Shown here: positions 41,900 to 64,000 of the stretch, in pieces
Position numbering within the stretch: position 1 is the stretch's first letter
Layout of the letters: the number at the start of each line of letters is the position of its first letter
DNA from: Epithemia pelagica
Taxonomy: Eukaryota; Protista; Bacillariophyta
Length of the DNA stretch: 64,000 nt
NCBI GenBank assembly: GCA_946965045.2
Contig: OX337229.1
Location: 3,782,001 to 3,846,000, forward strand
Direction: 5' to 3'
Position numbers and translations under genes: made by a program
The notes under the pieces: model-generated
Told to the model about the DNA's origin: nothing
Database searches by the model: none
What the model saw: only the letters and a program-made list of their open reading frames with translations

Positions 41900-42204
41900 C
41901 TTTTGACGGAGGTGGGGCTGGATTAGTTCATTATTCTTCTTGTCTGCGATGGATTGAAACCTTTCTTTTCATGCCTTTGTGCTTGCACACGCGGACTGTA
42001 CACATGTGTCTTCTGGTTTTTTCTGGTTACGTATCTTGTTTGTGCGAAAAGACAAACGCAACATTTGCTGCCGAGTAAATTACAACGAAAGAGAACTCTA
42101 CACACGGCCACTGTCCTATCAAACGATGAAGAAGGCCTGACAAGAACAGAGGCTCGAAAATGTTTGGAATTCGAGAGTGTAAAGACTACTCCTACGCAAC
42201 AAAG

Positions 42205-43185: not shown

Positions 43186-43664
43186 CTTCAATTGAAGTTT
43201 GACATCGTCTATGGTCTCATTCTAAAATTCTAATGGCCGACCCCAAGCACACGTAAGTTATCTCGGTCGCTCAACGGTCTCATGTAGATTTCTTTCTATG
43301 GCCCCTACCTACCGCTACCACGTCCTAGGAAGGTTTTCATACATGTAAGATTAAGTAGAACGGTTTGCAAATCACCCAAGGAAACGAATACTGATTAAGT
43401 TTTGACCGATATCCCTTGCCAAGCACTTGAAACTCTCTTGTTGTTGCGTGTTTAGGTTTGGATCTTTCTTCAGCTCGTCACAAGCGCTGTGGCTTACCCT
43501 TTAGAGGCGCTCTGTTAACCCAACAAGGAAGCTAGAAAGTCGTTGTTTCAGCAGCACTCTCTCTCAGAACAGAACTATGTGTCATACACTAGTCAATATG
43601 GTTCCTCAAGTCTTGACTTTTGTTTGTCGCATGAATGAATGTCATCACAATAACCGCCACATGT

Positions 43665-45827
43665 TCAGTCCGCTGGCGCAGCATGCTCGGAGGTATTGAT
43701 CGCCGGCAAACGATCTAGGCCTGGTACAGTTGAGCCAGTCCAAGAGCTTGTCGCTCCAGTGAGAAGGGAATCTTTCTCAGTGTTACCAAAAGCATCAGAT
43801 CCAAAAAGGCCAACTCCGCCAGGACCTGCTCCCCAACCCGAAAGGCCATTGGTGCTTGCTTTGTCGCTGCCCCAAGTACTGGAAGTTCCAAATGCGAAAA
43901 ACGAACGAGAAATGGATGAGTCTTCACCATTGTGCGTACCGGAAAATACAGGAGGATCCAGAGCTAACGAAGGAAGGCCCACTGTAGCGATTTCTTCCGT
44001 TGATTTAGACGCAAGGTTCGCGGGAGAGCTCATGAAATCAATTCCCTGCAAGGGATCGAAACCAAGGCCATCATCTGCTTCATTGCTTTCCTCTTCATCT
44101 TCAGTATCTTCTTGGGGTTTTGCGCCCTCTACCAAACTAGAGGCATCATCAGACCCCTCCTTGATTGCATTGGATGCAGCCACGGCGGCAGCAATCGCAG
44201 CAACACTAGGAGCCCACTCTTTTGCGGTAGGCTTTAAGGTCGGCGAGTCATCGACGCCAGTGATTAACTCAATTTTTTCGTCAGCCTTCACCCAATCCAT
44301 AACAGGTTGTGCTTCTTCCGCAGTGAATCCAGTATCCAATGACGCACCCATATTTAAATGGTTCTCCGCATTTTCCGAAGTGCCATTGTCATAGTCGGTT
44401 TCAACATACGAGCGCTTGTTGTCTTCCACCCACTCATCGTAAGCTTCCGAGTTCCGAACGCGTCCACCAGGGACACTATGGGCACCATAACCAAGATCAC
44501 CCTCGCATTCGTCCACCGAACGAAGGCCACCTTTACCGTCACCTTTGTAAAGAATACCATGAGTTCGAGGGAAACGACGATTGGGGTTTGCCTTCTTCTT
44601 TTCAACGTGAGAGCTACCCGTTGTCTCTTTGCGACTTTTCTGTTTGTTGCGGCCATTTTTCGTTATTATTTCTGGTGTTGCGGAGTCCTTTTCTTTCTTC
44701 CCTTTGGTGCGACTCTTTCGTGCCTTTCCAGTAGTATTCTCGGTCTTTGCTTTGACCTCTACCATCGAACCGCTCTTGGGATCGTACAACATACGAGGGG
44801 CGGTTCCAGAGCCACGCTCTCCACGATCTCTGTCTTCATAACTGGAGAGATGGATAAGAGGCTCCGGGTCCGGGATATCGACACTTTCGGACGTGGTCGG
44901 AGCTGCACCTGAGGAAGACTCCTTCCCATTCACCTTCATTCCGTTCGCCTTTGTTTCTGGCTCCCAAAGGAGCCTCGAACCTTTTTGCTGATGGTCATCT
45001 AATTTATCTTTTGATTTCGACTCGCCATTGACACCTTTCTTCTGTTCCAAGTCGAGAAGACGCGAAGCAGCCTTCGCTTTTTGTTCTGCAAATCGAGCTT
45101 CCTCTTCCTGCAACTTCATCTGAGCTCTTTCTTTGGCCAAACGTGACATATACGCTCGCTGGTCGTCACTATCTACCAATGTTCCGTTCGTGGAGGCTGG
45201 CGGTTGGCCGCGGCCACCGTACTCATCCCAAGAGGCACTTTCCTCATATTGTGGAAAGCCACTAGAATCTTCAAGCGTTTCATGTACAAACTCAGCATTC
45301 GGGGGGAGGCCATGCAAATCAGGGTAAGTGTCACGCTCCTCGAAAGATTTCTCTTCCCCCATTTCATTTTGTGAAATATCATAGTGCATATGTTGCTGTT
45401 CCTTCATTTGATTGGCCACACCCCAAGCATCGAGCTTGTGTTGCGAATCAGATTGAGATGCTCCAACCACCGCGGAAAGTAGGACTTGATGAGTAGTCGG
45501 ATTGGACTGAGATTGTAGATTCAACGACTGAACTGCGTTGTTCGAAGATCCCGAACTTCCTAATCCTCCATTGTTCGCAGATATTGTTGCGTTAGTTTTA
45601 CTTGCGAGCAATCCAGATGAGGGCTTCTTGGTACTGAGCAACAGAAGGCCATTTTTCATGTTACGGTCGAGCTTATCACTGGGAATAGGAGGGGCAGCAG
45701 GCTTCACTAGCTTGTTGAGATTCTTTCCGAATTTCTTCTTGTTGCTTAAACCCCCTCCGTTACCAGTTCCACCTGAGTTCCCATTATCACCGCGTTCATG
45801 ATGGGAACGTGAGGTGTACTGCGGCAT
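43665..45827 (-). CDS. PRRC2/BAT2/MOS1-like disordered protein with a PAM2-like motif
   Basis: N-terminal KKFGKNLNKL, charged helix MSRLAKERAQMKLQEEEARFAEQKAKA, and TLKPTAKEWAPS. Confidence 0.6.
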   Translation of the reverse strand: MPQYTSRSHHERGDNGNSGGTGNGGGLSNKKKFGKNLNKLVKPAAPPIPSDKLDRNMKNGLLLLSTKKPSSGLLASKTNATISANNGGLGSSGSSNNAVQSLNLQSQSNPTTHQVLLSAVVGASQSDSQHKLDAWGVANQMKEQQHMHYDISQNEMGEEKSFEERDTYPDLHGLPPNAEFVHETLEDSSGFPQYEESASWDEYGGRGQPPASTNGTLVDSDDQRAYMSRLAKERAQMKLQEEEARFAEQKAKAASRLLDLEQKKGVNGESKSKDKLDDHQQKGSRLLWEPETKANGMKVNGKESSSGAAPTTSESVDIPDPEPLIHLSSYEDRDRGERGSGTAPRMLYDPKSGSMVEVKAKTENTTGKARKSRTKGKKEKDSATPEIITKNGRNKQKSRKETTGSSHVEKKKANPNRRFPRTHGILYKGDGKGGLRSVDECEGDLGYGAHSVPGGRVRNSEAYDEWVEDNKRSYVETDYDNGTSENAENHLNMGASLDTGFTAEEAQPVMDWVKADEKIELITGVDDSPTLKPTAKEWAPSVAAIAAAVAASNAIKEGSDDASSLVEGAKPQEDTEDEEESNEADDGLGFDPLQGIDFMSSPANLASKSTEEIATVGLPSLALDPPVFSGTHNGEDSSISRSFFAFGTSSTWGSDKASTNGLSGWGAGPGGVGLFGSDAFGNTEKDSLLTGATSSWTGSTVPGLDRLPAINTSEHAAPAD

Positions 45828-46617
45828 GCTCGTTGGCAGCGCTGATCACAGAATGGCGACCACCACTCTCAACTGTTATCCGTAAATTCCACAGTAAAAA
45901 TCTTCTTCTTCCAAAACACGTTCTAGACCAGATAAGGGAGCCTCGCCCTGGTTGAACACAACGGTGGAGATTGGAATAAACCCGAATATTTCTGGTTCGA
46001 AAGAATAATGATTCGCTCGACGTCGGACAAGTGAAAAGTGGACACACGACGTGTATCTAGTTGCAGCAGCGAAGAGGGTGTTCACAACGTCGTCTCTCCC
46101 TCCGCTATTAAACTCATGCAACTTGCAACAGAAAGTATACAAAGCAACTAGGTAGGAGTAAGCAACTCGAAAAATTTGTTTGCTGCTGCTGCGTTTGTGT
46201 TGCTGCTTGCTGCCGCTCCGCTCTGTGTTTTGCGTTGTCTTGGTGTTTTCTACTCTAGCCAGAAGAGTACAGATCGCATAGCTTTACAGTTAGATAACTT
46301 TGCCGTGGTGTATCTCGCGTTGATTGACTATGAACAATAGAGTATCATGGGGACAGACACGCGCCAATACTTTTTAGTGGAAAAGCGAGTCACGCGATTT
46401 ACAGTCTCTTCTAAGTCGCGTGTGTGTCGCTTAGTGATGTCTCCTCCCACCATCAAAAAATTCATTCCGTATTCCATTCCATCGATTGTCGTAAATGAGA
46501 TGGGCATTCCCATCTCTTGTCAACTAGTTTCTCCCCTTCTTCGTCATAGTCCGCTCAAGACTGTTTATGTCGAGAACTGTTGATGACTTTCGATTCCAAA
46601 TGAAAAATTCTTATCTG

Positions 46618-48894
46618 ATGATGCCTGCCAAGATCTCGTTGTTCGCGAAAATAGCTTGGTTGCTGTCTTTCGCTCATAATAGAGGATGTCTGCGTGCGGT
46701 TGCTTTTTCTGTTCGCCCAATTCAAAGAGAATCGATTGTGCGCCCTATGGTATTGTATGCGTCATCTCTTCTGTCCAAGGATGGTGGAGAGAAAGACGAC
46801 TACTTGCCGCGATCGTTCTCCAACAGTACGGTTGTTGCGGGTCCCAATGGTGCAGAAGATGTGACAAAAAGGAACAGCACAGGAACGCCTCGCTCATACT
46901 CAAATTCATCGGTCCTTTCGGCCGGGTTCTCCAGCAATGGTGCGAAGCTTTCGAGCCCGCCTCCGTATGATGCGTCGGCAACCCTTGGTGTAGACCCGAA
47001 TCAAATTACATTTCAACCCGTGAGCAAAGACGAGAAGGAGGCATTCTCCAGTTGCCAGTCGCCCTTTGTTACCATGTTTAGAGGCTCGGCAAAATACATT
47101 GCCAACCACAGGAACACGCTAGCCGTCTATCACATTCCGGGAGGACTTTTGGATTTGCCAGACCCAAACGTCTTCCGTGATCTCATGCATGATATTGCCA
47201 TTACGTGGTTACTGGGTATGAAGATAGTTCTTGTCGTAGGGTGCCGACACCAGATCGAAAAGCGACTTGGGGAAGTAAACCGAGATCAAGGGTTAAGAGT
47301 GACCAACAAAGAAACTTTGAAAATTGTCAAGGAAGAAGCTGGGTCGGTCAGGTTTGAGGTGGAACGGCAACTTGCACGTTGTCTTCGTGGGCAAGGCATG
47401 GGGGCTTTTGGTGGAGGCGTGGCATCAGGAGGCTACTACGATGGCAATGTTGTGTCGGGAAATTTTTACTCGTCGCAACCCTATGGAATCCGTGATGGAC
47501 TAGATTTCGAGTGAGTAGTTTTCGTCAGAGTGGCAATGTCTAATGGACTTTGACTCACATTGTTTCGACCTTCTGCAATGTGGATGACAGATTCTCTGGT
47601 TTTCTACGGAAAGTAGAAGTTGAAAAAATCAGGCAGCTGCATGATAACCGAGATATATGCTTATTGACGGCTCTTGGTGTTAGTCCATCAGGCGAAGTCT
47701 TCAATGTAAATTCCGAGGCGCTGGCTGCGGGAGTTGCAGGGGCTCTAGAGGCCAGCAAAGTGATATATTTCACCGAAAATGATATGGAACTGAGACATAA
47801 GATACACGAAATGCAAGTACAATCCTTGCGACTCTCCGATGCCTCCGCACTGCTTCAGCATTATGGTGTGAACTGTCATAAACAAGGTATGTGTCTTTTA
47901 CCTCGACGTACTGAGCGTATGTAAATTTCTGATGACATTAACTTCTTCATCGAACAGGATATGTAACACTAGATGAGGACCCTCTATGCCGAGGTTCCCG
48001 GGATGTACGCAACGTACTCACCTGTATTGGCTGGGGAACTCGCGCTCTGGAACAAGGTGTGAGACGAGCTCACATCATTTCTCCCAGATATGGCGCCGTG
48101 CTGCAAGAACTCTTCACACGCGATGGCAACGGGATACTTGTTTCGGGCGACATTTATGAGGGAATAAGAAGAGCAACAGTGCAAGAAGTAGCAGAAGTAT
48201 GTTTTCCATTGCAGTGGATTCAACAGCATGTTATGTTGCCTTTCTCACCTCCCCTTGTCTGGTTGCAACATTTCAGATATACGAGCTTATTCAGCCGCTT
48301 GTGGAAAGAGGGAAATTGATTTATCGACCAAAAGCAACACTAGAGCATGACATTGACGATTATTACGTCTATACTCGAGACAACCATATTGTTGCCTGCG
48401 GACAGCTTAAACTTTTCGAGGATGGCTATGCTGAGATTGGATGCCTAGTCGTGTAAGACATTCAGTGCTGATTGCATGAGAGGGTACCGTACCTGCCTCA
48501 ACTTACTCCTTTCTTACGATGCAGGAGCAAAGACTACCGCAACAGGGGCCGTGGGGATGCAATGTTGGGCTATCTAGAACGATTGGCTCTGACCAATGAA
48601 TGTTTCACTGTTTTTGTTTTGAGTACGTATTCGGTTTGTTCGCCAATATTCCGTAATCTGTCATCTAATAATCGTCCATGACTTCGTGGTACTGAACCAT
48701 TTTCATCCTTTTTGCTTGCAGGCACACAAACCATGGAGTGGTTTTTAGAACGTGGTTTTCATGCAGCAGGTGTTGATCAACTTCCCAAAAGTCGACAAGC
48801 TACGTACAATCATGACCGCGCCAGTAAGATTTATAAAAAAAAGATCGAGACACAAAGAGACCTTGATGCAAGTGAACTTTGGTGGAATCGCTGA
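46618..48894 (+). CDS. argA: Amino-acid N-acetyltransferase / N-acetylglutamate synthase; 6 exons (46618-47510, 47591-47886, 47958-48196, 48277-48452, 48525-48622, 48722-48894)
   Basis: AAK domain FVTMFRGSAKYIANHR...ELFTRDGNG and GNAT domain EIGCLVVSKDYRNRGRGDAML...EWFLERGF. Five canonical introns restore the frame; presequence AVA|FSV. Confidence 0.92.
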
Positions 48895-49296
48895 GCGTCT
48901 TCTCTTCTACCCCTGATTTTGAACCACAAGTGTGATACTTTTCTCTTTGTGAACTTGATTTTCCCAATAGCCGCATGGAATTGCACGAGGCCAACGACAA
49001 TCTACATTGTGTGCTCATCGCACCAGGTTCATGACTGATTTTGAGCTCAAGCTTTAATACTTAATGATGATTCGAGTAGATTCCATCGAAATTGATCGCA
49101 TATTTAGCTCCTAAACGAGAGAAATATCACCTACGAGGCATTTCTTTCATGTAACCAGTGCCTTTCTTATTCCTATTGTCATACAGGAGAACAAACGAGA
49201 CAAGACATATGGACTGACTATAGACAGTCGGCGTTCAAAGCGCAGACGTCAACATTATTTCTATTAATAACTCACAGATTGGTTGAAAACGAATGC

Positions 49297-50775
49297 TCAA
49301 TCGTCATCATCATCGTCATCATCATCGTCATCATCATCGTCGTCGTCATCGTCGTCATCATCGTCATCGTTACTTGCACCTGGCTGGTAGTCGTCGTCGT
49401 CCTCGTCATCATCATCATCATCATCGAGGTCGGCGGCCGGGCTGTCTTCAATCATCTTGGGCTTGTCGTCTTCGTCGTCGTCGTCATCGTCGTCGTCATC
49501 ATTATCATCGACATCATCAACCGGAAGAAGATCAGGAGCTTCTGGGTTGTCGAAAACGACATCAGCATCTTGTTCATGTTCGTCACCTGGTATGACACCA
49601 ACATCAGCCTCAAATCCTGGGAATTTGAAGCCAACTGCTCTGTGTGTGGAAAACTTGACTGTTCCTTCTGGGCTTGAAAAAGCTACAGCAAGCTTGGGCT
49701 TATCCCCAGTTTCAACTGTGACCCCGGTGACACCGACATGGTCGAGGAGCTTGTGTACAGGATCGTCGTCGGGCGCCCTGATTGTCAGCTTCTTCAGTTT
49801 GCCAACCACTGGGAGTGTTGCACATGGATGGTCTGAGTTCGCCCAGTTGATGAAGAATGGACATGTTCCGCCCATCTTGTGTCCATAGAGATAAAGCATC
49901 TCCCACTTGCGCGGAGTTCCATCGGGCTTGGCACCGAACATGGTGATGTGGTCAGGGGTGTACCCAAACTGGCCGACTTCGTCCTTGAGTTCTTCAGCAC
50001 GCGTTGTTCGAATTGCGAAGTGGAAAGGAGTGAGTTCCTTGATCCCTTTTGCTTTGATGAGCTCACCAATGGGCCCAGGTCCCTTCGGATCCGGTGCAAT
50101 GATCTCCAAGTAACTTGAGTCCGTGAAAGATATACGAGCACATTTGATACCGAGTCCCTTGACTGTACCAGCAATAACTGCCGCAAGACCAGTTTTCTTC
50201 TCAAATTCTCCCATGGCTTCCTCGAGATCAGGGGCAGCAAGGACAATATGATCGATGACATTGTCGTCAAGAACAACTTCACGTTCGCTTGCTTCACTGT
50301 CATCATCATCGTCGTCATCATCGTCGTCATCATCATCATCGTCGTCGTCTCCACCATTCTCGGCGTCCCACTGGGCCATGAGCTGCTTCATTTCAGCGTC
50401 TTCCTCGTCGTCTTCTTCATCAGGGTCTGTGATCTTTTTCTTGGACTTCTTCTCTTTCTTCTTCTTGGGCTTCTTCCTCAATTCGTCAACAATGGGTTCA
50501 TCGCCTCCCGTCGTTTCAGTATCCGCCGTCATGTACGTCATCTCATCACCATCCATCATGGCTTCCTTTTTCTTCTTCTTATCCTTCTTTTTCTTCTTCT
50601 TTTCTTTCCGTTCTAACTCCTCTTGGTCTTCGTCCACGTCGTCCTCCTCTTCTCCGTCCACATAGACATCGTCTTTGGCGTCATCCTTTTCGTCCCACTC
50701 GGCTAGAAGCTTCTGCATCTTGATGTCTTCCTCATTGGGGGCATCATCACTGAAATCAGAGTCGTCGTCAGCCAT
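49297..50775 (-). CDS. Glyoxalase-like (VOC) domain protein flanked by hyper-acidic and Lys-rich tracts
   Basis: IDHIVLAAPDLEEA...G...NARI-like...SYLEIIAPDP and PFFINW motifs. Poly-Asp tracts on both sides, with a C-terminal run of more than 20 Asp. Confidence 0.85.
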   Translation of the reverse strand: MADDDSDFSDDAPNEEDIKMQKLLAEWDEKDDAKDDVYVDGEEEDDVDEDQEELERKEKKKKKKDKKKKKEAMMDGDEMTYMTADTETTGGDEPIVDELRKKPKKKKEKKSKKKITDPDEEDDEEDAEMKQLMAQWDAENGGDDDDDDDDDDDDDDDDDSEASEREVVLDDNVIDHIVLAAPDLEEAMGEFEKKTGLAAVIAGTVKGLGIKCARISFTDSSYLEIIAPDPKGPGPIGELIKAKGIKELTPFHFAIRTTRAEELKDEVGQFGYTPDHITMFGAKPDGTPRKWEMLYLYGHKMGGTCPFFINWANSDHPCATLPVVGKLKKLTIRAPDDDPVHKLLDHVGVTGVTVETGDKPKLAVAFSSPEGTVKFSTHRAVGFKFPGFEADVGVIPGDEHEQDADVVFDNPEAPDLLPVDDVDDNDDDDDDDDDEDDKPKMIEDSPAADLDDDDDDDEDDDDYQPGASNDDDDDDDDDDDDDDDDDDDDDDD

Positions 50776-51954
50776 TGTTGATGTGTTTGTTTTTGGGGGG
50801 TGTCCAAGCTCTTAGGATAGCACAGAGGACAACGTCGAACAATTTGTGACCATGACATGAGGGGAGAGTTTCTTGCTTAGGACACTTGTAGCTGTAGCTG
50901 GTTGGACCAAAGGTAGCCCAACACCCAATCGAAATCTCAAAGTTCTTGTCTTGATCTTGGTAGGTGTTGAGCGTTGAGTGCTAAATGACCAAAATATCCA
51001 GCAGTCTCCAGAGATCACTTCATTTTTCTGCAAACGGATGTTTTCATTTGAGAGCGATTGGGATTTGTTTCGTTCTTGTGCGAGATCTTGTTGTTGGTTG
51101 GGCGGGCGGAAATCGCCCAAGACCAAATAGAATGTCTCTCCCATATCTTGTGACCGAGGGAAGAATCAGTACTCCTTGAGCCACACTGAAAGAGCCCATG
51201 AGCTTCCCAACTCTCCAATAAACGCCCAAAACGAAAGATTTGAATTTTGACCGAGGTAGCTCAGGTACTCTCCAGCTAGAGGCCCGCTAGCTAGCTAGTA
51301 CTCCCTCTACTCTCTAGCTGGAAAGGCCTGGTAATCTGTAGCAAGAGGAATGGCCTCTCATAACCCGCTCTATTTCCTCTGGGTTGGATTCTCTTCTTCA
51401 GAAGAAGATGAACGGTAGAAAGAGGAAAGTTTAACCATCCAACCTGGATGAACAACTGTCATGGGAAACGTTTTGATATAGAGCAACTACCTTGTACTCC
51501 TAGTGCCTTCACGGGTGATACGGCCAGACCCTGCATTTTAGCGGCCAAATGACCATGGTGGTCTTTAACGATTACTAGCTCAATATAGCACCTCCATAGA
51601 AATGGGATGATAGAAATCATCTTCATACAATGCTTTAGGTCCCCACCGGGCACTTTTTCCATATCTGCCATCGTCATCGAGTTCTCTCTTATCATTGTAG
51701 GGTCATTTTTTTTTTGCGATTTGGCCGCTAGATTGCCCGTTGGCCGGTACATTCACCATGCGATTTCTCCACCAATACTTGACCAATTGCCATGAAATTA
51801 AAATATGTTATCGACATTAGTGTAAATGAGAACACTATTGACCCATATAGGCTATCCCCAAGCATAGGATGCCAACGAGCTTCCACACCATTGCGTCGAT
51901 TTTTCGACGTGGCACGGACCACATGAGATTAGCCTACTCATTCGTCGAAGTCAG

Positions 51955-53897
51955 CTCCATGAATACGGCCGCTCCAGACGTCCTACTTAGTAGTCTTTTA
52001 TGTTAGGCTCTACTTTAGCGATCTGAGGTATCAGATTGATCATCGGTGATATGGCCATTGAGAAAAGGCCATCCATCGATGGACGCTTCTTTTCGACGCA
52101 TCACACACAACACGAGTTTTCGACCAAAGGATGACGAGACCCGGCTCCATGGATATGGCCGCTCCAGACGTCCTACTTAGTAGTCTTTTATGTTAGGCTC
52201 TACTTTAGCAATCTGAGGTATCAGATCGATCATCGGTGATATGGCCATTGAGAAAAGGCCATCCATCGATGGACGCTTCTTTTCGACGCATCACACACAA
52301 CACGAGTTTTCGACCAAAGGATGACGAGACCCGGCTCCATGGATATGGCCGCTCCAGACGTCCTACTTAGTAGTCTTTTATGTTAGGCTCTACTTTAGCG
52401 CATCGATGGACGCTTCTTTTCGACGCATCACACACAACAGGAGTTTTCGACCAAAGGATGACGAGACCCGGCTCCATGGATATGGCCGCTCCAGACGTCC
52501 TACTTAGTAGTCTTTTATGTTAGGCTCTACTTTAGCGATCTGAGGTATCAGATCGATCATCGGTGATATGGCCATTGAGAAAAGGCCATCCATCGATGGA
52601 CGCTTCTTTTCGAAGCATCACACACAACACGAGTTTTTGACCAAAGGATGACGAGACCCGGCTCCATGGATATGGCCGCTCCAGACGTCCTACTTCTTTG
52701 ACCGTTACTATAGAGACTAAGTTAGGTTGTACAAGTTTCAGATCTGGCGTAGGGGCCATGGTCCTCATGGTCGAGGCGATCATCCATGGACGATTATTCG
52801 TCGTGCCACGGAGCACAAGGATTTTGGACCAATGGACGATGCCATGCCAATATTCGAGAATGGTCCCTCTGGACGTCCTACTTTTTTGCCCGTTACTATA
52901 GAGACTAAGTTAGGTTATACAAGTCTCAGATCCGGCGTAGGGGCCATGGTCCTCATGATCGAGGCGATCATCCATGGACAATTATTCGTCGTGCCACGGA
53001 GCACAAGGATTTTGGACCAATGGACGATGCCATGCCAATATTCGACAATGGTCCCTCTGGACGTCCTACTTTTTTGCCCGTTAGTATTGAGACTACATTA
53101 GGTTATACAAGTTTCAGAGCCGGCGTAGGGGCCATGGTTGTCAAGCTCGAAGCGATCGTTGTTGGACAATTTCTCGTCGTGCCACGCACCACAAGGTTTT
53201 TGGACCAAAAGACGACGCAACGCTGCTCGTTCAAAATGAGCTCTCGGCTCGTTGTACTTCATGGCCATTTAGTGTAGACACTAAAGTAGCTTACCGAAGT
53301 CTCAGATCTGGCGTAGGGGTCATGGTGGTCGAGCGCGATGCGTTCGTTGTTGGACAATTTCTCGTCGTGGCACAGACCACATGAGATTTCGACCAAAAGA
53401 CGACGCAACGCGGCTTGTTCAATATGAGCTCTCGGCTCATCCTACTTAGTGGACACTTGGTTTAGCTCCTACAGTAGCTTACCGAAGTCTCAGATCTGGT
53501 GTAGGGGTCATGGTGGTCGAGCGCGATGCGATCGTTGCTGGACAATTTCCCATCGTGGCATAGACCACATGAGATTTCGACCAAAAGACGACGCAACGCG
53601 GCTCGTTCAATATAAGCTCTCTGCACGTCCTACCCAATGGACACTTAGTTTAGCTCCTACAGTAGCTTACCGAAGTTTTAGATCTGGCGTAGGTGCCATG
53701 GTTGTCGAGCGCGATGCGATCGTCGATGGGCAACTTCTCGTCGTGGCACAGACCACATGAGATTTTGACCAAACGACGACGCAACGCGGCTCATTCAATA
53801 TATGCTCTCTGCACGTCCTACCCGATGGACACTTAGTTTAGCTCCTACAGTAGCTTACCCAAGCTTTAGATCTGGCGTAGGTGCCATGGTTGTTGAG
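51955..53897 (+). repeat. Left tandem array, about 10 units of 188-190 bp grading from type A to B to C
   Basis: Measured periods: 190, 190, 137 (deleted unit) and 190 for type A, then 188, 188 for B and 188, 188, 188 for C. Shared cores include GACGTCCTACTT and GACCAAA. Confidence 0.95.
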
Positions 53898-53988
53898 ATT
53901 GAATCGATCTTAAAGCAGAAACTTTTTTAACTAATGAAGCAAGTGTCTTGCCTTGTTTCTAACGTCAGCACTATATGTAGTTACTCAA

Positions 53989-54591
53989 CTATTCATCTTC
54001 AGAACTATCGCACAGGTCAACGAAGAACATAATCTTGGGCTTCTTGCGCTTGCGATGAGTCGGTGCCTTTTCCTTCGTGGTGGCTCGGCGTGGGATCGGC
54101 ACAAACAAAGAAGAGGCACGACTGTAGCGAGGTTTCCGATCGACCTTGGTGATGGTACAGGGAGGATCTTGTTGGCGGCAGCGTTTGGTTGGTCGTGGCT
54201 TGAATGGTTGAAACGGACTCGTTGCATCGTTGTGATGCAATTCGTCGTGTGGCTTGGGGGAGGCCGCAATCAAGTGACGATGCGGTGCGGCAGGAGCTGG
54301 ATCTTGGTGGGCTTCTTCTTCTTCTTCTTCTTCTTCTTCTTCTTCTTCTTCTTCTTCTTCTTCTTCTTCTTCTTCTTCTTCTTGTTCTTCTTCTTCATAA
54401 TCTTCTTCATAATCATCATCATCATCTTCTTCTTCTTCTTCATAATCATCATCTTCATCATCTTCATCTTCTTCTTCTGCTTGGGCTTGTCGTCGTTCGT
54501 TGTGGTTGCTCCGCATGGCGTCCATTTCCAACAAGACTCGTCCTACGAGTTCGGCAATGATGGCCGCATCAGACGGCGATGGCGACGACAT
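53989..54591 (-). CDS. Acidic cargo protein: poly-Glu, NLS and C-terminal SIM-like motif
   Basis: 200-aa ATG ORF with an N-terminal helix, an E/D tract, HRKRKKPK and FFVDLCDSSEDE-stop. Confidence 0.55.
   Translation of the reverse strand: MSSPSPSDAAIIAELVGRVLLEMDAMRSNHNERRQAQAEEEDEDDEDDDYEEEEEDDDDDYEEDYEEEEQEEEEEEEEEEEEEEEEEEEEEEEAHQDPAPAAPHRHLIAASPKPHDELHHNDATSPFQPFKPRPTKRCRQQDPPCTITKVDRKPRYSRASSLFVPIPRRATTKEKAPTHRKRKKPKIMFFVDLCDSSEDE
54312..54383. repeat. (CTT)n trinucleotide microsatellite, about 24 units
   Basis: An uninterrupted CTT run that encodes poly-Glu on the minus strand. Confidence 0.9.
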
Positions 54592-55098
54592 GCTTTTACT
54601 GCAAGTGATGGCAGGACTGAGGACCGACGAATCGAATCCCGCCCCGTACCAGTCAATGAAAGTGTTGGGAGGGAGAAGATCTTTTGTTTTGTGGCTGCTT
54701 TTTCGGAATTTTGTGGGAAGGCGATGCCACCAAGTAACCTATGACTCCCAAGCGTCAACTCTTCGAACACTATTCTATATAGATCAATAGTGTATAATTC
54801 ACTCCTTCTCTCCATAAATTTTCGAGCGCTAGAGTGCTTACTTGAGGGTGTCGTATCTTTCGGTCGCTCATCAGCATGATAGCCAGGCATAGCATGGGTA
54901 GTCGGAGGAGAGTTGGAGGGAATATGTCACACGTCCCCCACATTTCCCCCAATCCACAGATGAATTTTATTGCAAGTCAACTGATCGAGATCGCAGACAC
55001 AAGTGACAAGAGACGAGAGAGACAAGAAACCATGTCCGAGAGCTCATTCAACACAACAATGAACTAAAGTATTACATGCAGCTATAAACTAATAAGTC

Positions 55099-57678
55099 TC
55101 AATTGTTCAAATCGAGTCCACCGAGCACTTTCGTTGGTGAGGAGTAAGGGATGTTGTGACCGTGCTTGTAGAATTTTGCGAGACGATCATTCATCTCATA
55201 TTCGGTCGGTAATTCATAGTTGTTTCTGGGTGGGTATGTATGGACAGTCTCATCGCGTCCTTGGTACACGTAGAAATGGGCACGTGGATCACCTTGGGTA
55301 CCATTCACGAAGCCTCCAGCGTGAACGGTATCGCCTCGCGTAAGCAGCATCGTTCCATAAGGGATCTCAACCACCTCACCCAGCTGATGGAGTTTGGCAG
55401 TGTGGTTGTTACGATGCTGCCATATTTCCACGGCCATGCCGGCTTCCGTCAGGGGCATGAAGACAACAAACGGGACACGTTCTTTGAACGGTGCCTTTTT
55501 CTTTCCCACTCCCAGAGTTGTCACTCCTTACGATCTCGGGCTCTCACCGGGCAAAAGGTCATTGGAACTCGGCGTGACAACTTCCCACATGAAGTCCAGG
55601 TGCGGCTCTTGGACTTTTGGCTCTTCGGTCTTGATATAGGACAGGTGAATCTGGATTCCGTCCGCAAACGAGACGTCTGCTGCGTAGCCCATCTCCACAA
55701 GGGCTTGAGCGAGAACTGTCTTGAAATTCTTCGTCATTGCAGCTAGCTCGTCCTTAGAGTAGGCGCTAAAGTCATGGCTCATCACAAAACCTTCATTTTC
55801 CTGCATGCGCATTTGAATTTGCTTCGAGAAGTTTTGAACCCCTCGCATCCTCTTCGTGATCTTGTCCTTTCCGTGCCTGTCCGTTCCGAGACACCACGGT
55901 AGACGCAACGTATCAAGCAGCTCCTTCGCAACCACCACAAAACGTCCTCGGCGGTCACCCTCGAGATCGACCAACAAATGGGCATGCTTCCGGTGCAGTT
56001 CCTTCACTTGCTGCTCTGTAGTCGCTTGTTTGACGACGGAATCTTCAATGCGCTCGAGTGACGGAGCTGCCGATCCTCCCGGACTGGAGAGATGATGGAG
56101 TACCGGGTGATGGGAAGGATGAATGGGCTGTGGTGGTACCTGCCCATATTCTCCATAAGGTGGCTGCCCGTAGGCCGGCGAGTAATGAGGCTGACTTTGC
56201 CCTGGGTAGTGCACCGACGCGAATGCGGACTGCTGATAGTGGGGAGGAGATTGGTACAGAGGAGGTTGGCGTGGAGGATGATAGTACGGTGGAGGCTGCT
56301 GTGGATGTTGGTACGGAGGAGATTGGCCGTAGGTTTGATGGTCGTGAGCAGGGACAAGACCACGGGCTGGAGGAGGGGAACCAAGAGGAACAGGGGCAGT
56401 CAAAGTGGCAGCAATGGCAGGAGTAGTGACCTGAGGAATCGGAAAAACAACAGGAGCATCATCCACCGGACCATGTTCAGAGAGCTGCACTGGAGAATCC
56501 GCCTCACCAGAACGACGTGTATTTGGCTTCTTCTTGTTCTTCTTCTTTCCCGGCAAATCTTCGCTCTCTTCCCCACCAGTGGATCTACCACGCTTCTTTC
56601 CTGCGCCCTCGCGAGGGATGTAGGATGAAGCTTGCATTGCATTCTCCTGGGTGATGTTGTAGAACAAGAAACACTCTTTGCCCTCGTCGATGTCCCTGAT
56701 TGCGCGGACGAGAAGATTTTTTTCCACTTTAATGTTGTACATTTCATCTGCTTCGTTGGGGACTTCACCCTTGTCGTAGAGGTTGTAGTAGGGATCGTTG
56801 CTCAGATGGAATCCCATGAAAAAATAGTTCTCGTTGTCAGGTTGAACAGTGTGTGGTTCATCGTCGGCTCCAAATTGAAGCGAGTACTTGCTCCGCGGGA
56901 CAAGTTTTGTTGTTACATCCTGTCCTGCATAGACACCTATCACCTCTCCTTCTTTGTATTCCTGCGCTGCAAAAATACCAAATCCACCGTCTTTTCCGTC
57001 TTTGACTTTGACCTTCGACTTCTTCACAACAAAGAGAGGTGTTTTTCCCAGCATAATGTTGAACTCCGGGTCATGGTCGAGCGTGAAACTGACATTCGGG
57101 AATACGTTCATTTTTTTCCCTCGGTGTTGCTTCAACGGAATCCCAATTCCCACAGATCTCGGTGCATTTGTTCCGAGTTCGACACCGTACTCATCGACCT
57201 CCTTCTTGATACCTGTCCCTGATTTCCGAATGGGAGCAGCTTTCACCGAAAATGTTACGCTAATCTTCTGCGAGACGAACTCTCCGTATGCGTTGAGAAG
57301 CACATCACTTTCGTGGATTGTAGAGGCCAGATGTGTGAGTCCTTGGATGAAATTGGTACGCGGATCTCGCGTAGAGCTCTTAATGCGCTTCACTGCTGCG
57401 ACGGCGGTCCTGTAGGCCTCTTTACGTCGGTCAACGAGGCGCTGACTCATCGCCCGGTGCGTGACGCTGTAGGCTTTGTCACTATCATCCTTCAGATTGC
57501 CTCGACGACTCTCCGCAATCCTATTTTCGGTCACCATAGCAAGATCTGCGTCCGAAAGAAACCGATGATGACCCGCTGTTGGTGTCGCTTCCTTCGTTGT
57601 TGTCATCTCCTCTTCGGGCGCTTCGTCTGCTGTTGCTGTTGTTGCTGCTGTTGCTGCTGTTGCTGTTGTTGCTGCTGT

Positions 57679-57726
<48 letters not shown>

Positions 57727-57792
57727 TGGCGGTGCGGCTGCCTGTGAGACAGTGTCTACAGCATCCAAAAGAGTATCAAACCTCGTTGGCAT
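55099..57792 (-). CDS. SET domain + 2OG-Fe(II) dioxygenase-like fusion, interrupted by one in-frame TAA (55528-55530)
   Basis: SET-like GGFGIFA...GEVIGVYAG...GFHLSNDP...VRAIRDIDEGKECFLFY. Dioxygenase-like QEPHLDF...RGDTVHAGG...DPRAHFY spans both ORFs in the same frame. Confidence 0.75.
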
Positions 57793-57950
57793 CGTTTATC
57801 GTTTTATTCTCGTGTTCAACAAAAGGTTTCCTTCGTCGGTCGAACACTTGAAACGCGACGAAACACCACGATCCACAGTTGACTTGAACTAAAATTGAGT
57901 AACGCTTTTGAGAATCCAAACTTACTTATGCCCTGTGCGCATGGCAAAGC

Positions 57951-58021
57951 CACATTTTTGGTGCGTTGACTGCTGCGACTGCATTAGGCACATTTTTCGG
58001 TATGTTGACTGATGCGACTGC
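57951..58021. promoter_or_regulatory. Direct repeat (38-bp period) in the ~400-bp head-to-head spacer between the SET gene and the transposase
   Basis: CACATTTTTGGTGCGTTGACTGCTGCGACTGC and CACATTTTTCGGTATGTTGACTGATGCGACTGC. A regulatory role is inferred from position only. Confidence 0.45.
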
Positions 58022-58190
58022 GTCACAAACTGAGAGGTTTTCCCTCCAACATTGATCCACAGTTCATTTAACAACCATGTTTCCAAATCGGAAATTTGCT
58101 TTCGACCCACGATGGAAATTGTCTTCCTTTACCTTTTACATTGCTCAGAATAGAGACGCGAGACAAAGCGGTAGAGAAAGATAATCAAAG

Positions 58191-58783
58191 ATGCCCACGA
58201 CGCAGAAGGCGAAAGATCAGAAAGCACCTTTAGGAGTTGGAACGAAATGCTACATACGACAAGGAGACAAGGGCATGTATTATTATTGAGGCCCTTGATT
58301 TGCAAAAGTGGCGTGTTGCTGTAGTAGACAGGCAAGGCAATCCTACTGACCAGATAGAAGAAGCCACGTCCAAGAGACTACGGAAAATAAAGAAAGATGA
58401 GCGCTTTCCTGGGGAACCCGTACCGGACCCAGATGAAACAGCCGTAAGCACAACCGCAGCCGCAACCGAGACCGTGGCCGTAACCGCAACCGCAACCGCA
58501 GCCGCAGCCGCAGCCGCAACAACAACCACAACCACAACCGCAGCCGCAGCCGCAGCCGCAACCGAGACCGCAACTGCAACCGCAACCGCAGCCGCAGCCG
58601 CAACAACAACCACAACCACAACCGCAGCCGCAGCCGCAACCGAGACCGCAACTGCAACCGCAACCGCAGCCGCAGCCGCAACAAGAACAACAACCACAAC
58701 CGCAACTGCAACTGCAACCGAGACCGTGGCCGCAACTGCAACGGAGACCGTGGCCGTAACCGCAACCGCAACCGAGGCCGCGG

Positions 58784-58815
<32 letters not shown>

Positions 58816-61589
58816 GGAGCTGAGCCACCCGTCACGGAAGCGAGTACAATTCACCCACCGATTTTGACAGATGTGGACCAAGACGAAGACGATCCGAACA
58901 TCATAGCGCAAGCTGCGGAAGCGGAGAATGTAGACCACGGGCCCCCAACCAATGAAGGCAATGCAAATGATGAAGAGGAAGGTGGTGCTGCTGTTATTGC
59001 CGAGGCAGCGGCCGCTGCCGCCGCCGATGAGGATGACTCGTCGGTTGCAGCAGCGGATAATGAAGCCGCTGAAGATCCAACGGAGCTTGATGCAGATCTT
59101 GAGAATGAGGGGGCTGAGCAAGCCAATGCAATGGCTCTCGGGGCCCTTGTTGAACAAGACGACGACATTCACCGTCAGAGATTCGCGGCCTATAGGGCTC
59201 GAAAACAGCATCTCATTACGTCCAACTGGAAAGTGACCATGAAACCTCCAAAGAAGAAAGGGATTGAGGTCGGGGATAGAGTTTCCGAGAGGGGTGCGAA
59301 TCCTCAATACGGGATAGTCATCAGCGGAAGAAAGGTTCCAAATGCTTCTCAAGGAAACCTGTGGACGGTGCATTTTGATGGAGATGAGGAAGCGACCATA
59401 GATATCAAGCATACCCAACTCCGAAAGCCCGACGACAACCGAACTTTCGTATGGAAGATTGTACGGGATTCGTCTCCCGATGAGTCAGTCACCGAATACC
59501 AAGAGGCTGTTGGAATTGTAGGCTTCGACTTTTTGGGGAAAATGGCTCCGTACGAAATTAGCGCAGATAATATTGAGTACAAGTACCCCTTTCTTGACTT
59601 GTTGCTTCATTTCTGGCCTGGTAAGTCAGCACTCTTTTTCTTGAATGCCCTTTAGTCCATGTCTCATTTTTCTATCGATTTGCTCATCCATTTCAGGAAA
59701 TTGGCGTGATCAGCTAAAAAACCTTAATTTATTCTTAGAGCGAACAAACCCTTCTCGCCATAAAAAGAAGAAGATTCGACCCGTGACAGAGAAAGAATGG
59801 TGGGTTGTATGGGGAGTGATCCTCTCTGCCAATCCCCTCAAAAAGGGAGGAAAGGCTCTTTTCCAGAAGCCTGAACAACGACGGCTGTCGTCCACAGTGA
59901 ATCTCGGCACAAAAGGCGAAAACTTTATTGCTGAGAGTCGGTTCATGGATATCAAAGAGCATCTCAGGCATGCCTTTGCGGGACGGGACTCCACTGACCC
60001 CTGGAATGAAATCCGTCCATTGATTGACGGCTTTAATCAGAATTGCCGAGGCGTAGTTGCAGCATCCGCGACACAAGTGCTTGATGAATGCATGAGTGCA
60101 TTTCAACCACGGACAACCAAGTCATCATTGTTGCCACATCTGTCTTATGTGGCACGGAAGCCCAAACCTCTTGGAACTGAATTCAAGGTGAGTAAATGGA
60201 GAAGAGGATATTTCCAGAAGCTTTGTTACTCACTGTGTGATATTCCCTTGACAGGTGACTGCAGACACTGCGACTGGGTGTCTGACCTTTCTTGAAATCC
60301 AAGAAGGCAGACTCCCGATGCGTGCGAAGAAGTATGTTGATGGTTTGGGAGTAACTGGAGCGACAACTCTGCGACTGATTGAGGGCTCGCAATACTCAGG
60401 GCAGCAATTAAATGGTCGCTATGAATCCCAACTCGATTCCAAGCGATGCCTCTATATCGGAGACTCTTGGTTTGGAAGTGTCAAGATGGCCGAGAACCTC
60501 AAGTGTACGTGGCACGAGCAGACGGAGGACGACGATGATGATGGTCTCGTGTATTACGTGGATAAGGAGAAAGGGGTCAACCCAGACGCCCACGAAGTGA
60601 TTGGTGCCGTCAAGACCGCCCACTCTTGGTTCCCCAAGGACGAACTTGAGAAGGAGATGAAGGACTTCCCATCCGGCGCCTATCTCGTCATGGAGTGCAC
60701 GGCACCTGAGACGGGAGTAAAGCTTGTTGGAATCGGATACAAGTACAACTCACGGAAGGTCCTCCTCTTTGTTATGACTAAAAATGCGGGGAAAACGACC
60801 CCGGGATCTCCGTACATTGCTCGATTTACCGATGAGTTCGGCAATGTCAAAAGCCGGAGAGTCGAACGGCCTGACTGTATTTCCCAGTACTTCAAGTGTG
60901 CGAATAAAATTGACCGTCACAATCATCTGCGTCAGGGCATCCTCCGTCTCGAGCAGTACTGGAGAACAGTTGATCCATGGTTTCGCATTGCGACAACGGT
61001 GTTCGGAATGACAGTGTCTGATTGTTACCTTGGCATGCGTTTTCATCTGCAAGCGGAACCATTCTCGAGCTTTACGATCGAAGACTTCGCGGATATGCTC
61101 GCAAACGACCTTTTGAGAAACAACTTTTCCGATGATCGCAGCAATCGAAAGGCGGGCATGTTACCAAACATCCCAGTGACACGTCGTCCGCCGCTTTCGG
61201 TACACACTGTTGGGCCCTCAGCTTCTGTGCCATCGAGCGTGCACAATGTGGGGGGGGGGGGGGGGGGGGGGAATGCATCTCCTAACTCCATGGTGTCTGA
61301 TCTGACCAATGATTCACTGGTTTGTCATGAGGTTGTGGAACAGGCAGAAAAGTCTTTATCTGACCAGCGGCCCGTGAAGCGCAAATGTGTTATTTGTAAA
61401 AATGACACGAGATCAATGTGCGGGCATCCAACATGCTGCAATATAATCAAGATGTTTCGTGGGGAAGCCAAAGTTGGAGTTCCTTTGTGTAAGCCCTCCA
61501 TGGGTATTCGTCGCGGGCAAGTGCGGACTTGCCTTGAAGAGCACATGTGCCGTGTTATTGCGGCAAGCCAAAAGGAAAACCACAACTGA
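58191..61589 (+). CDS. piggyBac-like transposase (DDE_Tnp_1_7 type), ~1084 aa if one extra base near 58271 is removed; introns 59621-59696 and 60188-60254
   Basis: VLDECM, RKPKPLGTEFK|VTAD, YIGDSWFGS, IGAVK and NKIDRHNH give the catalytic D/D/D. The C-terminal Cys-rich domain is CVIC...CGHPTC...PLC...CLEEH. Confidence 0.88.
58445..58815 (+). repeat. GCA/GCC/ACC/ACA codon-repeat tract (Ala/Thr-rich, with internal higher-order duplications)
   Basis: Repeated ACCGCAGCCGCAGCCGCAACAACAACCACA and ACCGAGACCG blocks. Confidence 0.9.
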
Positions 61590-61720
61590 TTTGTCCCGAA
61601 CATGAGAACCAGGTCGACTCTACATTGTTTAATGTCTTTGCATATTAATAAATTATGATTAGGAGCTTAGTAACATCGAAATCTTAGTACTCAAGTGTAA
61701 TATGCTATGGGATCCTACGA

Positions 61721-62263
61721 CTAATAGGTTCGAACGCTCTCCTGATGGGGCCACGTCTCTGTCGCTTTATCAAAAAGTGACATGAACGTAGCCATCCCAA
61801 CAACACTCATCCGCACAGTAATGACCATGGGCCCCATGGCCATCTTGGTATCCAAAGAATGAGCCGGCTCAATCGTGAGCTCTCCTTTGACAAGGGAACC
61901 ACTCTTGGAACGGAACTTCTTGGAGCGTATTTTCTTGTAGATCGATCCGACTGGGATGACGACATCAGGCATCAAATCATCCATCTTCTCCCGACCAAAT
62001 GCGCTAATTGATAGCATCCCACCGTTGCTCCCGTACTTGGAGCGCTGTAAAAGAACGACACCTCGATCCACCACAAGCGTCCCCTTTCCACCTTTCCCAT
62101 CACGAGCACGAGCGGCGTCTTGGACGTACACATTCACGCCCGCTTTGCCATAGATCGTTGCTCGGCTACCATGGAGCTGAATCTCGCTCCCGTCATCTTG
62201 CATCACGTTGAACCCATTTGCAAGGAGAAGTCTATTGCGCGATTCGTGCTCGTATTCCGACAT
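61721..62263 (-). CDS. Hypothetical 180-aa beta-rich cargo protein (probable ATG 62263)
   Basis: Open frame with alternating hydrophobic strands and a terminal helix. No confident family assignment. Confidence 0.55.
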   Translation of the reverse strand: MSEYEHESRNRLLLANGFNVMQDDGSEIQLHGSRATIYGKAGVNVYVQDAARARDGKGGKGTLVVDRGVVLLQRSKYGSNGGMLSISAFGREKMDDLMPDVVIPVGSIYKKIRSKKFRSKSGSLVKGELTIEPAHSLDTKMAMGPMVITVRMSVVGMATFMSLFDKATETWPHQESVRTY

Positions 62264-62752
62264 CGTCCTTCGTCCATCGTAAATGTAGAAAATATGAAGG
62301 GTGAGACGCGATGAGTCGCACAGTGCAAAACAAGTTTGAGATAGGCACTTATCTCTTTTCCTACTCCTTATTGGATTGTCAAATGAAAAGTCTTTAGTTA
62401 GAGGAGCTTGCCACTCAGATGGCCGATCAATTCTCTCCTCTCTGCACGAAAGGACGAACACGTCCGTGGTATCCAGTCGGCTTGCATAAAAATGCAGTTG
62501 TGGTTTGGGGGAAACGGTGGGGACTTTCTACAATTGCCACTCGGGATTAATTAAAACAACGTGACGATATGCTTAAGAAAAGTTCCATCCGTTGAAGCGC
62601 GTGCCCTCCACAATTTACAGCGCGACAAGATTTTAATGTGAGACGACTGGTCGATCATCAATCAAATAACAAGAGCAACCTTCCCATAAAGGCATAAAGG
62701 ACAGCAAGGAAAAGAAAACAGACGACAAAAGCAAGGACAAAGAAAGAAAGAC

Positions 62753-63265
62753 ATGTCGCTCTACATCGACAAGCGCCGTGTTAGTGCGAGGCTCCAAGGC
62801 CGTACGACCAAAAGTGTTGTCACAACTGGTGCATCCAAACCCACTATGCGCCCAACCCAAAAAGGTGCCCACAAGAACAACAAGAACAACAACAACGACA
62901 ACAATGCGAAAGCCGTAGATACGGAGAAGAAGAAGGAGATCTTGCTCGGGTGTGATGCAATTGGTGTGGAAATGAGTCGATCATCAATCCTCAAGATGAG
63001 AAACGATTTCCTGGAACATGGATCGAACGGAGGGAGCAACACTCCAGTGCGCCATTCCAAGATCAATTTTGCTGATGAGATCAGCCCCATCCCTGAAGAC
63101 AATCAGAAGCCTTCGTCCCGTTTATCCACCCTGAGCACCGCCTCCATACGTAGCCTCAAGAGTGCATCTTCCCGTGGAACTGCTGTAGACAGCGATCTTT
63201 CGTTCGACTTTGCCGAGACTCAACAAGATGACGGTGACTTCCTCTTCAACACCTATGGAAAATAA
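62753..63265 (+). CDS. Hypothetical 170-aa disordered cargo protein
   Basis: ATG ORF divergent from the 61721-62263 gene. Basic N-terminus with RRVSARLQ and a KINF motif. Confidence 0.5.
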   Translation: MSLYIDKRRVSARLQGRTTKSVVTTGASKPTMRPTQKGAHKNNKNNNNDNNAKAVDTEKKKEILLGCDAIGVEMSRSSILKMRNDFLEHGSNGGSNTPVRHSKINFADEISPIPEDNQKPSSRLSTLSTASIRSLKSASSRGTAVDSDLSFDFAETQQDDGDFLFNTYGK

Positions 63266-63344
63266 ATGATAGTTAAGCCTGTCAAGTATAGCAATGACGA
63301 TAAATATGGAAACATAAGCTTTAGAGTTGGATCATAGCGCGGCT

Positions 63345-64000
63345 TCGTCCATTGGTCCAAAATCCTTGTGCTCCGTAGCACGACGAATGATTGTCCATGG
63401 ATGATCGCCTCGATCATGAGGACCATGGCCCCTAAGCCGGATCTGAGACTTGTGTAACCTAACTTAGTCTCTATAGTAACAAGCAAAAAAGTAGGACGTC
63501 CAGAGGGACCATTGTCGAATATTGGCATGGCATCGTCCATTGGTCCAAAATCCTTGTGCTCCGTGGCACGACGAATGATTGTCCATGGATGATCGCCTCG
63601 ATCATGAGGACCATGGCCCCTACGCCGGATCTGAGACTTGTATAACCTAACTTAGTCTCTATAGTAAGGGGCAAAAAAGTAGGACGTCCAGAGGGACCAT
63701 TCTCGAATATTGGCATGGCATCGTCCATTGGTCCAAAATCCTTGTGCTTGGTGGCACAACGAATGATTGTCCATGGATGATCGCCTCGATCATGAGGACC
63801 ATGGCCCCTACGCCGGATCTGAGACTTGTATAACCTAACTTAGTCTCTATAGTAACGGTCAAAGAAGTAGGACGTCTGGAGCGGCCGTATCCATGGAGCC
63901 GGGTCTCGTCATCCTTTGGTCAAAAACTCGTGTTGTGTGTGATGCTTCGAAAAGAAGCGTCCATCGATGGATGGCCTTTTCTCAATGGCCATATCACCGA
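63345..64000 (-). repeat. Right tandem array, inverted relative to the left array: three type-B units then type A, cut by the window edge
   Basis: CGTCCATTGGTCCAAAATCC at 63346, 63534 and 63722 (period 188). From about 63860 the sequence is the reverse complement of the left A/B junction and type A. Confidence 0.95.

Follow-up and report, generated by a model that had tools for sequence, protein, structure and literature searches.

The window analysed here, 64,000 nt of contig OX337229.1 of Epithemia pelagica, ends in a group of genes enclosed by inverted tandem arrays, among them a piggyBac-type transposase and a gene that joins a SET-like domain to a 2-oxoglutarate (2OG)-Fe(II) oxygenase. 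Is this block a mobile element, and if so, what does such a gene do on it? From 51500 to ~64.9 kb, the block is very probably a copy of a piggyBac-superfamily DNA transposon, ~14 kb long, that moves by cut and paste, is dispersed over unrelated loci and belongs to a recently active family. The window copy itself is non-autonomous, with two inactivating mutations: a frameshift in the transposase and a stop codon in the SET-oxygenase gene, which we call the cargo gene. This defective state, the probable CTAG target, and the probable standing of a small gene (ORF178, for open reading frame 178) as the ancestral accessory gene of the clade were all overlooked in the preliminary description of the locus.

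Borders, arrays and dispersed copies

Tandem Repeats Finder and a repeat finder locate the left array at 51954-53893 (plus strand), with periods of 190 and 188 bp, and its inverted counterpart at 63336-64000 (minus strand), where the end of the window cuts across the array. The arms are complementary at 94% over 665 nt, in agreement with the preliminary description, which had seen a block bracketed by inverted copies of one tandem array; no further array copies were found elsewhere in the 64-kb window. The left border, which that description had placed at 51435, lies at 51500. From there inward, the element consists of CTAG (51500-51503; either the duplicated target site or the outermost bases of the terminus itself), a unique terminal segment of ~450 bp that begins with TGCC (51504-51953, plus strand), and the left array, with 190-bp A units outside and 188-bp B/C units inside. 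The right array mirrors this order, with B units inside and A units outside. By analogy with the complete copy L006 (see below), the window copy would extend ~925 bp beyond 64000. The preliminary description had looked for a mirrored right end past this point, and the right terminus was indeed recovered from contigs of sequencing runs.

We searched for other copies in a second assembly of the same organism (ENA ERZ21939226), using the C-terminal transposase ORF as query and considering loci on long contigs. Seven related copies were found in three subfamilies, two of them complete (14.0 and 14.3 kb). Over up to 11.3 kb, L001, L004, L005 and L006 share 96-98% identity with the window, and their flanking genes are unrelated to those of the window. 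L006 is complete, with 14,036 bp between mirrored termini. A second subfamily is represented by L003 (63% amino acid identity in the transposase), also complete at ~14.3 kb, which has 193-bp units and inverted repeats 95% identical over 2480 nt; a third is represented by L002 (79% identity in the transposase). In the long elements, the inverted repeats measure ~2.4 kb, with a 450-bp unique end followed by tandem arrays of 188-193-bp units, and every long copy shows the same mirrored order of terminus, 450-bp unique segment, outer A units and inner B/C units; the unique segment occurs once per end in the complete L006 and L003. A 118-nt core of the array is ~77% conserved between the window units and the 193-bp units of L003. 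The window and the 11 assembly loci (L001-L011) were compared in this respect, and every array seen among them lies within such an element. Transposase, cargo and arrays recur together at unrelated loci in the three subfamilies, which bears out the suggestion that they constitute a dispersed unit.

Two compact relatives (L010:7217-13712 and L011:7528-13939) belong to the same piggyBac clade, with 46-54% amino acid identity in the transposase. They are 6.4-6.5 kb long, have CTAG-TGCC termini and inverted repeats of 215-240 bp, and carry the transposase and a homologue of ORF178; of ORF170, the second small gene of the long elements, a remnant of the C-terminal motif is left. The SET-oxygenase gene is absent from both, as are arrays from their ends, and their inverted repeats show no similarity to the terminal 450 bp of the window copy or to its arrays past the first ~13 nt.

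Individual loci also show local peculiarities. In L001 (13938-21026), the right terminal 450 bp are missing and a Copia-type RVT_2 gene follows; L004 (1-1493) lacks the first ~300 bp of its left end and lies beside an HTH/DUF7769 gene; L005 has extra fragments of the terminal segment just outside its right end (14211-14724). The left edge of the L002 locus (1-932) holds an unrelated piggyBac-type gene (702 amino acids, DDE_Tnp_1_7).

The transposase and its insertion site

Between the arrays, three plus-strand ORFs span 58237-61589, and the middle one matches Pfam DDE_Tnp_1_7 (59645-60295, E 2.8e-9). They belong to a single spliced gene (58191-61589), as the preliminary description had recognised in reporting a piggyBac-type transposase with all three catalytic Asp motifs. 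A profile built from 22 exon-3 sequences matches the Trichoplusia ni (T. ni) piggyBac transposase, PDB 6x67, with E 1.2e-7, and aligns the DE and D-x-WF motifs, which hold the first two catalytic Asp residues; the third corresponds to the invariant column D220 of alignment A5. The consensus of A5 also conserves a C-terminal CxxC...C...C...H pattern, its alignment to the 6x67 tail being weak (6.9 bits). Single-sequence phmmer searches of the transposase exons against PDB gave no match. Starting from the codon at 58191, the three exons (58191-59620, 59697-60187 and 60255-61589) are separated by introns of 76 nt (59621-59696) and 67 nt (60188-60254), which have GT-AG borders, restore the frame and are conserved in five copies. 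In exon 1, an additional A at 58269/58270 shifts the frame of the window copy by +1; four sister copies are free of it. After in silico splicing, an intact protein of 1111 amino acids is obtained only from L004, with L001, L005 and L006 reaching stop codons at residues 731, 520 and 265, respectively.

The N-terminal 500 residues contain two conserved repeats of ~65 amino acids, with a Thr/Ala-rich tract between them. These repeats are 51-78% identical between subfamilies and have no match in Pfam. Their Atlas features give weak SH3-like leads (0.78-0.83), and an AlphaFold (AF2) model of the repeat, from a 6-row alignment, has a predicted local distance difference test score (pLDDT) of 35.

An empty site, such as the preliminary description had expected of a mobile unit, is seen at the window locus itself, both in the second assembly and in contigs of sequencing runs. 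L007, found through the exact protein of the Glyoxalase_3-domain gene on the left of the element, matches window 39297-51452 at 99.9% identity and then runs on with no element inserted. We also compared four DNA runs of the same organism at the left junction (X2 being the same sample as X1). The contig of the filled junction spans 51420-51526, at a depth of 71.8 versus 156.8 for the flank in X1 and of 65.3 versus 121-135 in X3, and the empty allele is present in X2 contigs. Since depth at the filled junction is roughly half that of its flank and the empty allele is seen, the insertion is probably heterozygous and recent. The run contigs read GTACTC-CTAG-TGCC at the left junction, GGCA-CTAG-GAGCAGG at the right junction of the window copy (the flank expected after CTAG being GAGCAGGTAGC), and GTACTC-CTAA-GAGCAGG in the empty allele. 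In the right-junction contig, the 27 letters outside the terminus, read in reverse complement, match the right flank of the empty site. The window insertion is complete, with CTAG on both sides, and apparently heterozygous in the sequenced strain.

CTAG followed by TGCC is found in 16 of 16 termini from five subfamilies: both ends of the window copy, L003, L005, L006, L010 and L011, the left end of L001, the right ends of L002 and L004, and one further copy known from reads only. The base before CTAG varies (C, T, A or G). The preliminary description had assumed TTAA duplications; TTAA was found at none of the termini examined, and there is no direct repeat outside CTAG. The target is probably CTAG, with a 4-bp CTAG duplication, and the transposase would make the 4-nt staggered cut typical of its superfamily at CTAG instead of TTAA. 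We found no CTAG-targeting piggyBac in the literature. Diatom piggyBac-related elements have been mentioned as "weakly related" and are uncharacterised (PMC2806351).

Several observations weigh against this interpretation of the locus. The single empty site known reads CTAA instead of CTAG, so that one base change must be assumed, and this holds equally if the target duplication were a 2-bp TA, in which case the C and G on either side would reflect target choice or belong to the inverted repeat, and the cut geometry would be unlike that of piggyBac; read as CC-TA-A, the site fits TA as well as CTAG. We consider a TA duplication quite improbable, given that the C before TA is invariant in all 16 termini while the next base outward varies, that the empty site retains four bases between its two flanks, and that piggyBac-family enzymes make 4-nt staggered cuts. 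Moreover, a single-nucleotide polymorphism near the site would not be surprising, because the haplotypes differ strongly just to its left: despite 99.9% identity for 12 kb, they diverge markedly over the last 50 bp before the insertion (window 51453-51499 versus L007 reverse strand 12157-12320), where a 12-bp indel, TTCTCCTAGGAG, contains a target-like palindrome, CTCCTAGGAG, and a segment of ~110 bp is replaced. The indel and the replaced segment may be traces of an earlier insertion and excision. Further, the window stops short of this copy's right terminus, which is known solely through the 27-nt flank in the run contigs; no RNA run contains the element, and the introns are predicted from their GT-AG borders, frame restoration and conservation. 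The transposase is intact in just one of the five close copies, and both large genes are intact in none of those checked. Such widespread breakage would fit an immobile host gene cluster, formed around a domesticated piggyBac-derived gene, segmentally duplicated and flanked by satellites. This we regard as extremely improbable in view of the precise, identical termini at unrelated loci, the presence and absence of the block at a clean site in one sample, and the neutral evolution of recent copies together with purifying selection between subfamilies; the empty site and the defined ends rule out a host locus or segmental duplication.

On the empty haplotype, a DDE_Tnp_4 (Harbinger/PIF-type) gene lies between the insertion site and a GT34 gene (L007:4802-5722, the reverse strand of the window's right flank) and may account for ~6 kb of extra distance relative to the window haplotype. 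The Glyoxalase_3-domain gene to the left of the element (49297-50775, minus strand), which contains long Asp-rich codon repeats (GAT/GAC arrays), is an ordinary gene of the host.

The SET-oxygenase cargo and the small genes

The cargo gene (55099-57792, minus strand) is divergent from the transposase; the 398-bp spacer between their start codons (57793-58190) is, from the gene positions, presumed to be a bidirectional promoter. Its product comprises an N-terminal region, a SET/PR-like domain (56656-56985), a Pro/Gln-rich linker and a 2OG-Fe(II) dioxygenase domain of the double-stranded beta-helix type (55102-56052). The gene is a single ORF of 891, 894 and 921 amino acids in L001, L006 and L003, respectively. 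In the window it appears as a SET ORF of 754 amino acids (55528-57792) followed in frame by one of 141 (55099-55524), as AAA has changed to TAA at 55528-55530; this stop codon does not occur in L001, L004 and L006, the three alignable copies.

The SET part exceeds the Pfam PF00856 gathering score (24.6 versus 22.4 bits) in the window, L001 and L006, and scores 17.9 bits in L003. Searched against PDB, its profile matches SET/PR proteins throughout, weakly (E 0.005-0.8; MECOM, PRDM, EZH2 and KMT2A chains). The GFG motif and the terminal LFYN tyrosine are conserved, and NHSC is replaced by HL-x-ND. Judged by these motifs, the domain appears PR-like and its methyltransferase activity is uncertain. 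Of the SET "writer" previously proposed, then, the SET fold is supported by the profile, whereas the canonical NHSC motif is missing.

The C-terminal domain, of 317 residues, has no family in Pfam. Using it as query, a word-index search retrieved only four proteins, all from the same assembly, and an exhaustive search retrieved 216 representative homologues at E<=1e-3; a homologue search with the full-length cargo returned nothing, low-complexity words swamping it. The QxPHxD, RxDxxHxGG and PRxH columns are invariant in 28 homologues, and so are H151, D153, H244 and R257, the predicted iron triad and 2OG basic residue. The AF2 model has a pLDDT of 85.5 and a predicted template modelling score (pTM) of 0.85, and shows a 2OG-Fe(II) dioxygenase fold, with a VIA Z of 11.9. 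Foldseek gives a probability of 1.0 to FtmOx1, KanJ and AsqJ, with 255 PDB matches at E<=1e-3, and the listed top 50 are all 2OG oxygenases. As modelled, the domain is a member of the 2OG-Fe(II) dioxygenase-superfamily fold, and the preliminary description was correct in seeing a gene with SET and dioxygenase-like parts. It had further cast the dioxygenase as an "eraser", which the fold comparison does not favour: the nearest neighbours are FtmOx1, KanJ, AsqJ, OkaE, AusE, prolyl hydroxylases and PhyH-like proteins, and neither JmjC, TET/JBP nor AlkB is among the listed top matches in PDB, AFDB clusters and Swiss-Prot. In L002 (2863-6065), a 1247-bp segment over the 3' part of the oxygenase domain is present in triplicate, with >99% identity.

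Three small ORFs had also been reported between the arrays, two of which are conserved genes under purifying selection. ORF178 (61721-62257, minus strand, in an ORF of 61721-62461) is convergent with the transposase; it shows 75-83% amino acid identity between subfamilies and 48-51% to its homologues in the compact relatives, and has no relatives in Pfam, the PDB profile search or Atlas. A P2X7-ballast-like identity for ORF178 was considered and rejected, as it has no Pfam match and no Cys-rich pattern. ORF170 (62753-63265, plus strand) is 52-60% identical between subfamilies at the amino acid level and matches no family. The third, a putative acidic poly-Glu ORF of 200 amino acids (53989-54591, minus strand), has no comparable support: its Pfam matches are low-complexity noise only, a 35-amino acid match in L002 is uninformative, and it is absent from L003.

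Compared between subfamilies, ORF178 has a ratio of nonsynonymous to synonymous substitution (dN/dS) of 0.19, ORF170 of ~0.3, the cargo gene of 0.35 and transposase exon 3 of 0.19-0.35; recent copies give ~0.5-1, which fits the decay expected after insertion. The four genes are thus under purifying selection between subfamilies. The SET-oxygenase is a long-standing, selected part of the element and not a neighbouring host gene, because it co-occurs with transposase and arrays in three subfamilies and its dN/dS of 0.35 is seen over a divergence with dS ~1.1. The single-copy host gene that the preliminary description had allowed for is not what we found: the cargo travels with the transposase and the arrays. 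Given that the compact relatives have the transposase and ORF178, but neither the SET-oxygenase nor arrays, ORF178 would be the ancestral helper of the clade, and the cargo and the arrays derived in the long subclade, in whose ancestor the two would have been added together.

Relatives of the oxygenase also occur outside this family. L008 and L009 contain SET-oxygenase paralogues (~40% amino acid identity) with no piggyBac gene nearby, in a shared unit of ~9.8 kb (L008:3861-13693 and L009:3821-13534) that is 80% identical, sits at different sites and has inverted repeats of ~32 bp beginning with CAAGCTG, with a TA flank on both sides. The language-model (Atlas) features of an ORF of 840-1113 amino acids in this unit resemble those of DDE_3 (Tc1/IS630-type) transposases (0.90-0.94); the 1113-amino acid version in L009 gave no match in Pfam or PDB, nor did hhalign relate it to the piggyBac profile. 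The two loci represent a second dispersed element family, possibly Tc1/IS630-like. The oxygenase family has cellular members too, as indicated by P0078, a homologue without SET (39%) whose gene surroundings are ordinary and agree among three independent contigs from metagenomes or runs, a fourth being too short to judge. Another homologue, P0089 (523 amino acids), combines the oxygenase domain with a TFIIS/Med26 helical-bundle domain (PF08711, E 3e-12), and oomycete structural neighbours of the oxygenase carry C2H2 fingers; these fusions are a weak hint of a nuclear role, in transcription or chromatin.

What the cargo does for the element can be read in more than one way. In the reading we favour, the SET-oxygenase gene would derive from a cellular oxygenase family and be kept for its benefit to the transposon, the most plausible route being modification of a nuclear protein or of nearby chromatin; the arrays would offer the transposase many binding sites, much as subterminal repeats are seen to do elsewhere. 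L002, which keeps the N-terminal part and the oxygenase without SET, counts against this reading, SET being dispensable at least there. A bolder reading, possible but rather doubtful, makes the SET/PR and 2OG-oxygenase fusion a transposon effector, gained independently by two unrelated DNA-transposon superfamilies (the CTAG piggyBac and the TA-flanked, Tc1/IS630-like elements), that would act on chromatin or a nuclear protein against silencing or in preparing integration sites, the arrays serving as a landing platform for the effector or the transposase.

The loss of SET in L002, the stop codon in the window copy, the existence of cellular homologues and the transposition of the compact relatives without any SET-oxygenase would all suit a passenger, carried along or kept for a host benefit or for a selfish function unrelated to chromatin, with no part in transposition. 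With a dN/dS of 0.35 at a dS of ~1.1, retention of the gene in two or three subfamilies, and a paralogue of its own in an unrelated transposon family, we judge this possible, if somewhat doubtful. The preliminary description proposed a self-contained chromatin system in which a Tudor-like reader, a SET writer, a dioxygenase eraser, small histone- or SUMO-binding peptides and nucleosome-length arrays block silencing or steer integration. In its favour, SET and 2OG-oxygenase domains are indeed present and selected, a second transposon family carries the module as well, homologues have TFIIS/Med26 or C2H2 domains attached, and the two N-terminal transposase repeats are conserved, with Atlas features that hint at SH3-like barrels. 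Yet the nearest oxygenase folds are of PhyH, AsqJ, KanJ and P4H type, with JmjC, TET and AlkB not among the top matches, the SET domain is PR-like and lacks NHSC, the model of the Tudor-like repeat reaches a pLDDT of only 35, and ORF178 and ORF170 show no recognisable motif; in this complete form the system seems unlikely.

Comparison with known transposons

piggyBac is a main tool of genome engineering, and strict dependence on TTAA is one of its defining traits. A natural, recently active CTAG clade, together with the intact 1111-amino acid transposase of L004, gives direct access to this specificity and possibly to its re-targeting. The clade also documents the stepwise growth of a transposon, the earlier stage being a 6.4-kb element that has two conserved genes and a vestige of the ORF170 C-terminal motif, the later one a 14-kb element in which the genes number four and the ends consist of arrays. 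The SET-like/2OG-oxygenase fusion, selected in two transposon lineages, is a candidate transposon-encoded modifier of host chromatin or proteins, in marine stramenopiles, a group whose control of transposons is poorly known.

Unusual within the piggyBac superfamily are the CTAG target, the size, the array-built ends and the four selected genes. A typical piggyBac is ~2.5 kb long, has one gene, targets TTAA, and bears inverted repeats of 13-19 bp with CCC...GGG ends. The element described here shares with the canonical piggyBac of T. ni (6x67) the transposase superfamily, the three Asp motifs and possibly a C-terminal Cys-rich tail, as well as the cut-and-paste layout with terminal inverted repeats and a palindromic, TA-centred 4-bp site at both junctions. 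It differs in having CTAG rather than TTAA and TGCC...GGCA rather than CCC...GGG ends, in its length of ~14 kb and its four selected genes, in its array-built inverted repeats of ~2.4 kb, and in a transposase with two introns and a 500-amino acid N-terminal extension. In ciliates, PiggyMac, a domesticated piggyBac-family host gene, removes internal eliminated sequences at TA-centred sites. It is likewise a piggyBac-family enzyme working at a 4-nt, TA-centred site other than TTAA, but there the gene is a domesticated one of the host, whereas here it belongs to a mobile transposon with its own ends.

The nearest precedent in size is Teratorn, a piggyBac-like transposon of teleost fish fused to an alloherpesvirus, 41-182 kb long with inverted repeats of 18 bp (PMC6431247). 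Both are natural piggyBac-type elements far above the usual size and with extra genes; in Teratorn the cargo is a whole herpesvirus genome, while ours consists of one SET-oxygenase gene and two small ORFs, between array ends. Foldback-type and other long-inverted-repeat transposons also have kilobase-sized inverted ends made of tandem units, whose number differs between ends and between copies. They belong to another transposase superfamily, and in our element the arrays lie inside a unique terminal segment of 450 bp.

With respect to cargo, fungal KDZ and Plavaka transposons carry TET/JBP 2OG-oxygenases, and the VANDAL elements of Arabidopsis encode the anti-silencing factor VANC. In all of these, as here, an accessory gene for a 2OG-Fe(II) oxygenase or for an anti-silencing factor is a stable part of a DNA transposon, an association that recurs across element families. 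Unlike the oxygenase of KDZ and Plavaka, the one described here is not of the TET/JBP type, judging by its fold neighbours, and is fused to a SET/PR-like domain. Its carrier is of piggyBac type, joined possibly by a Tc1/IS630-like one.

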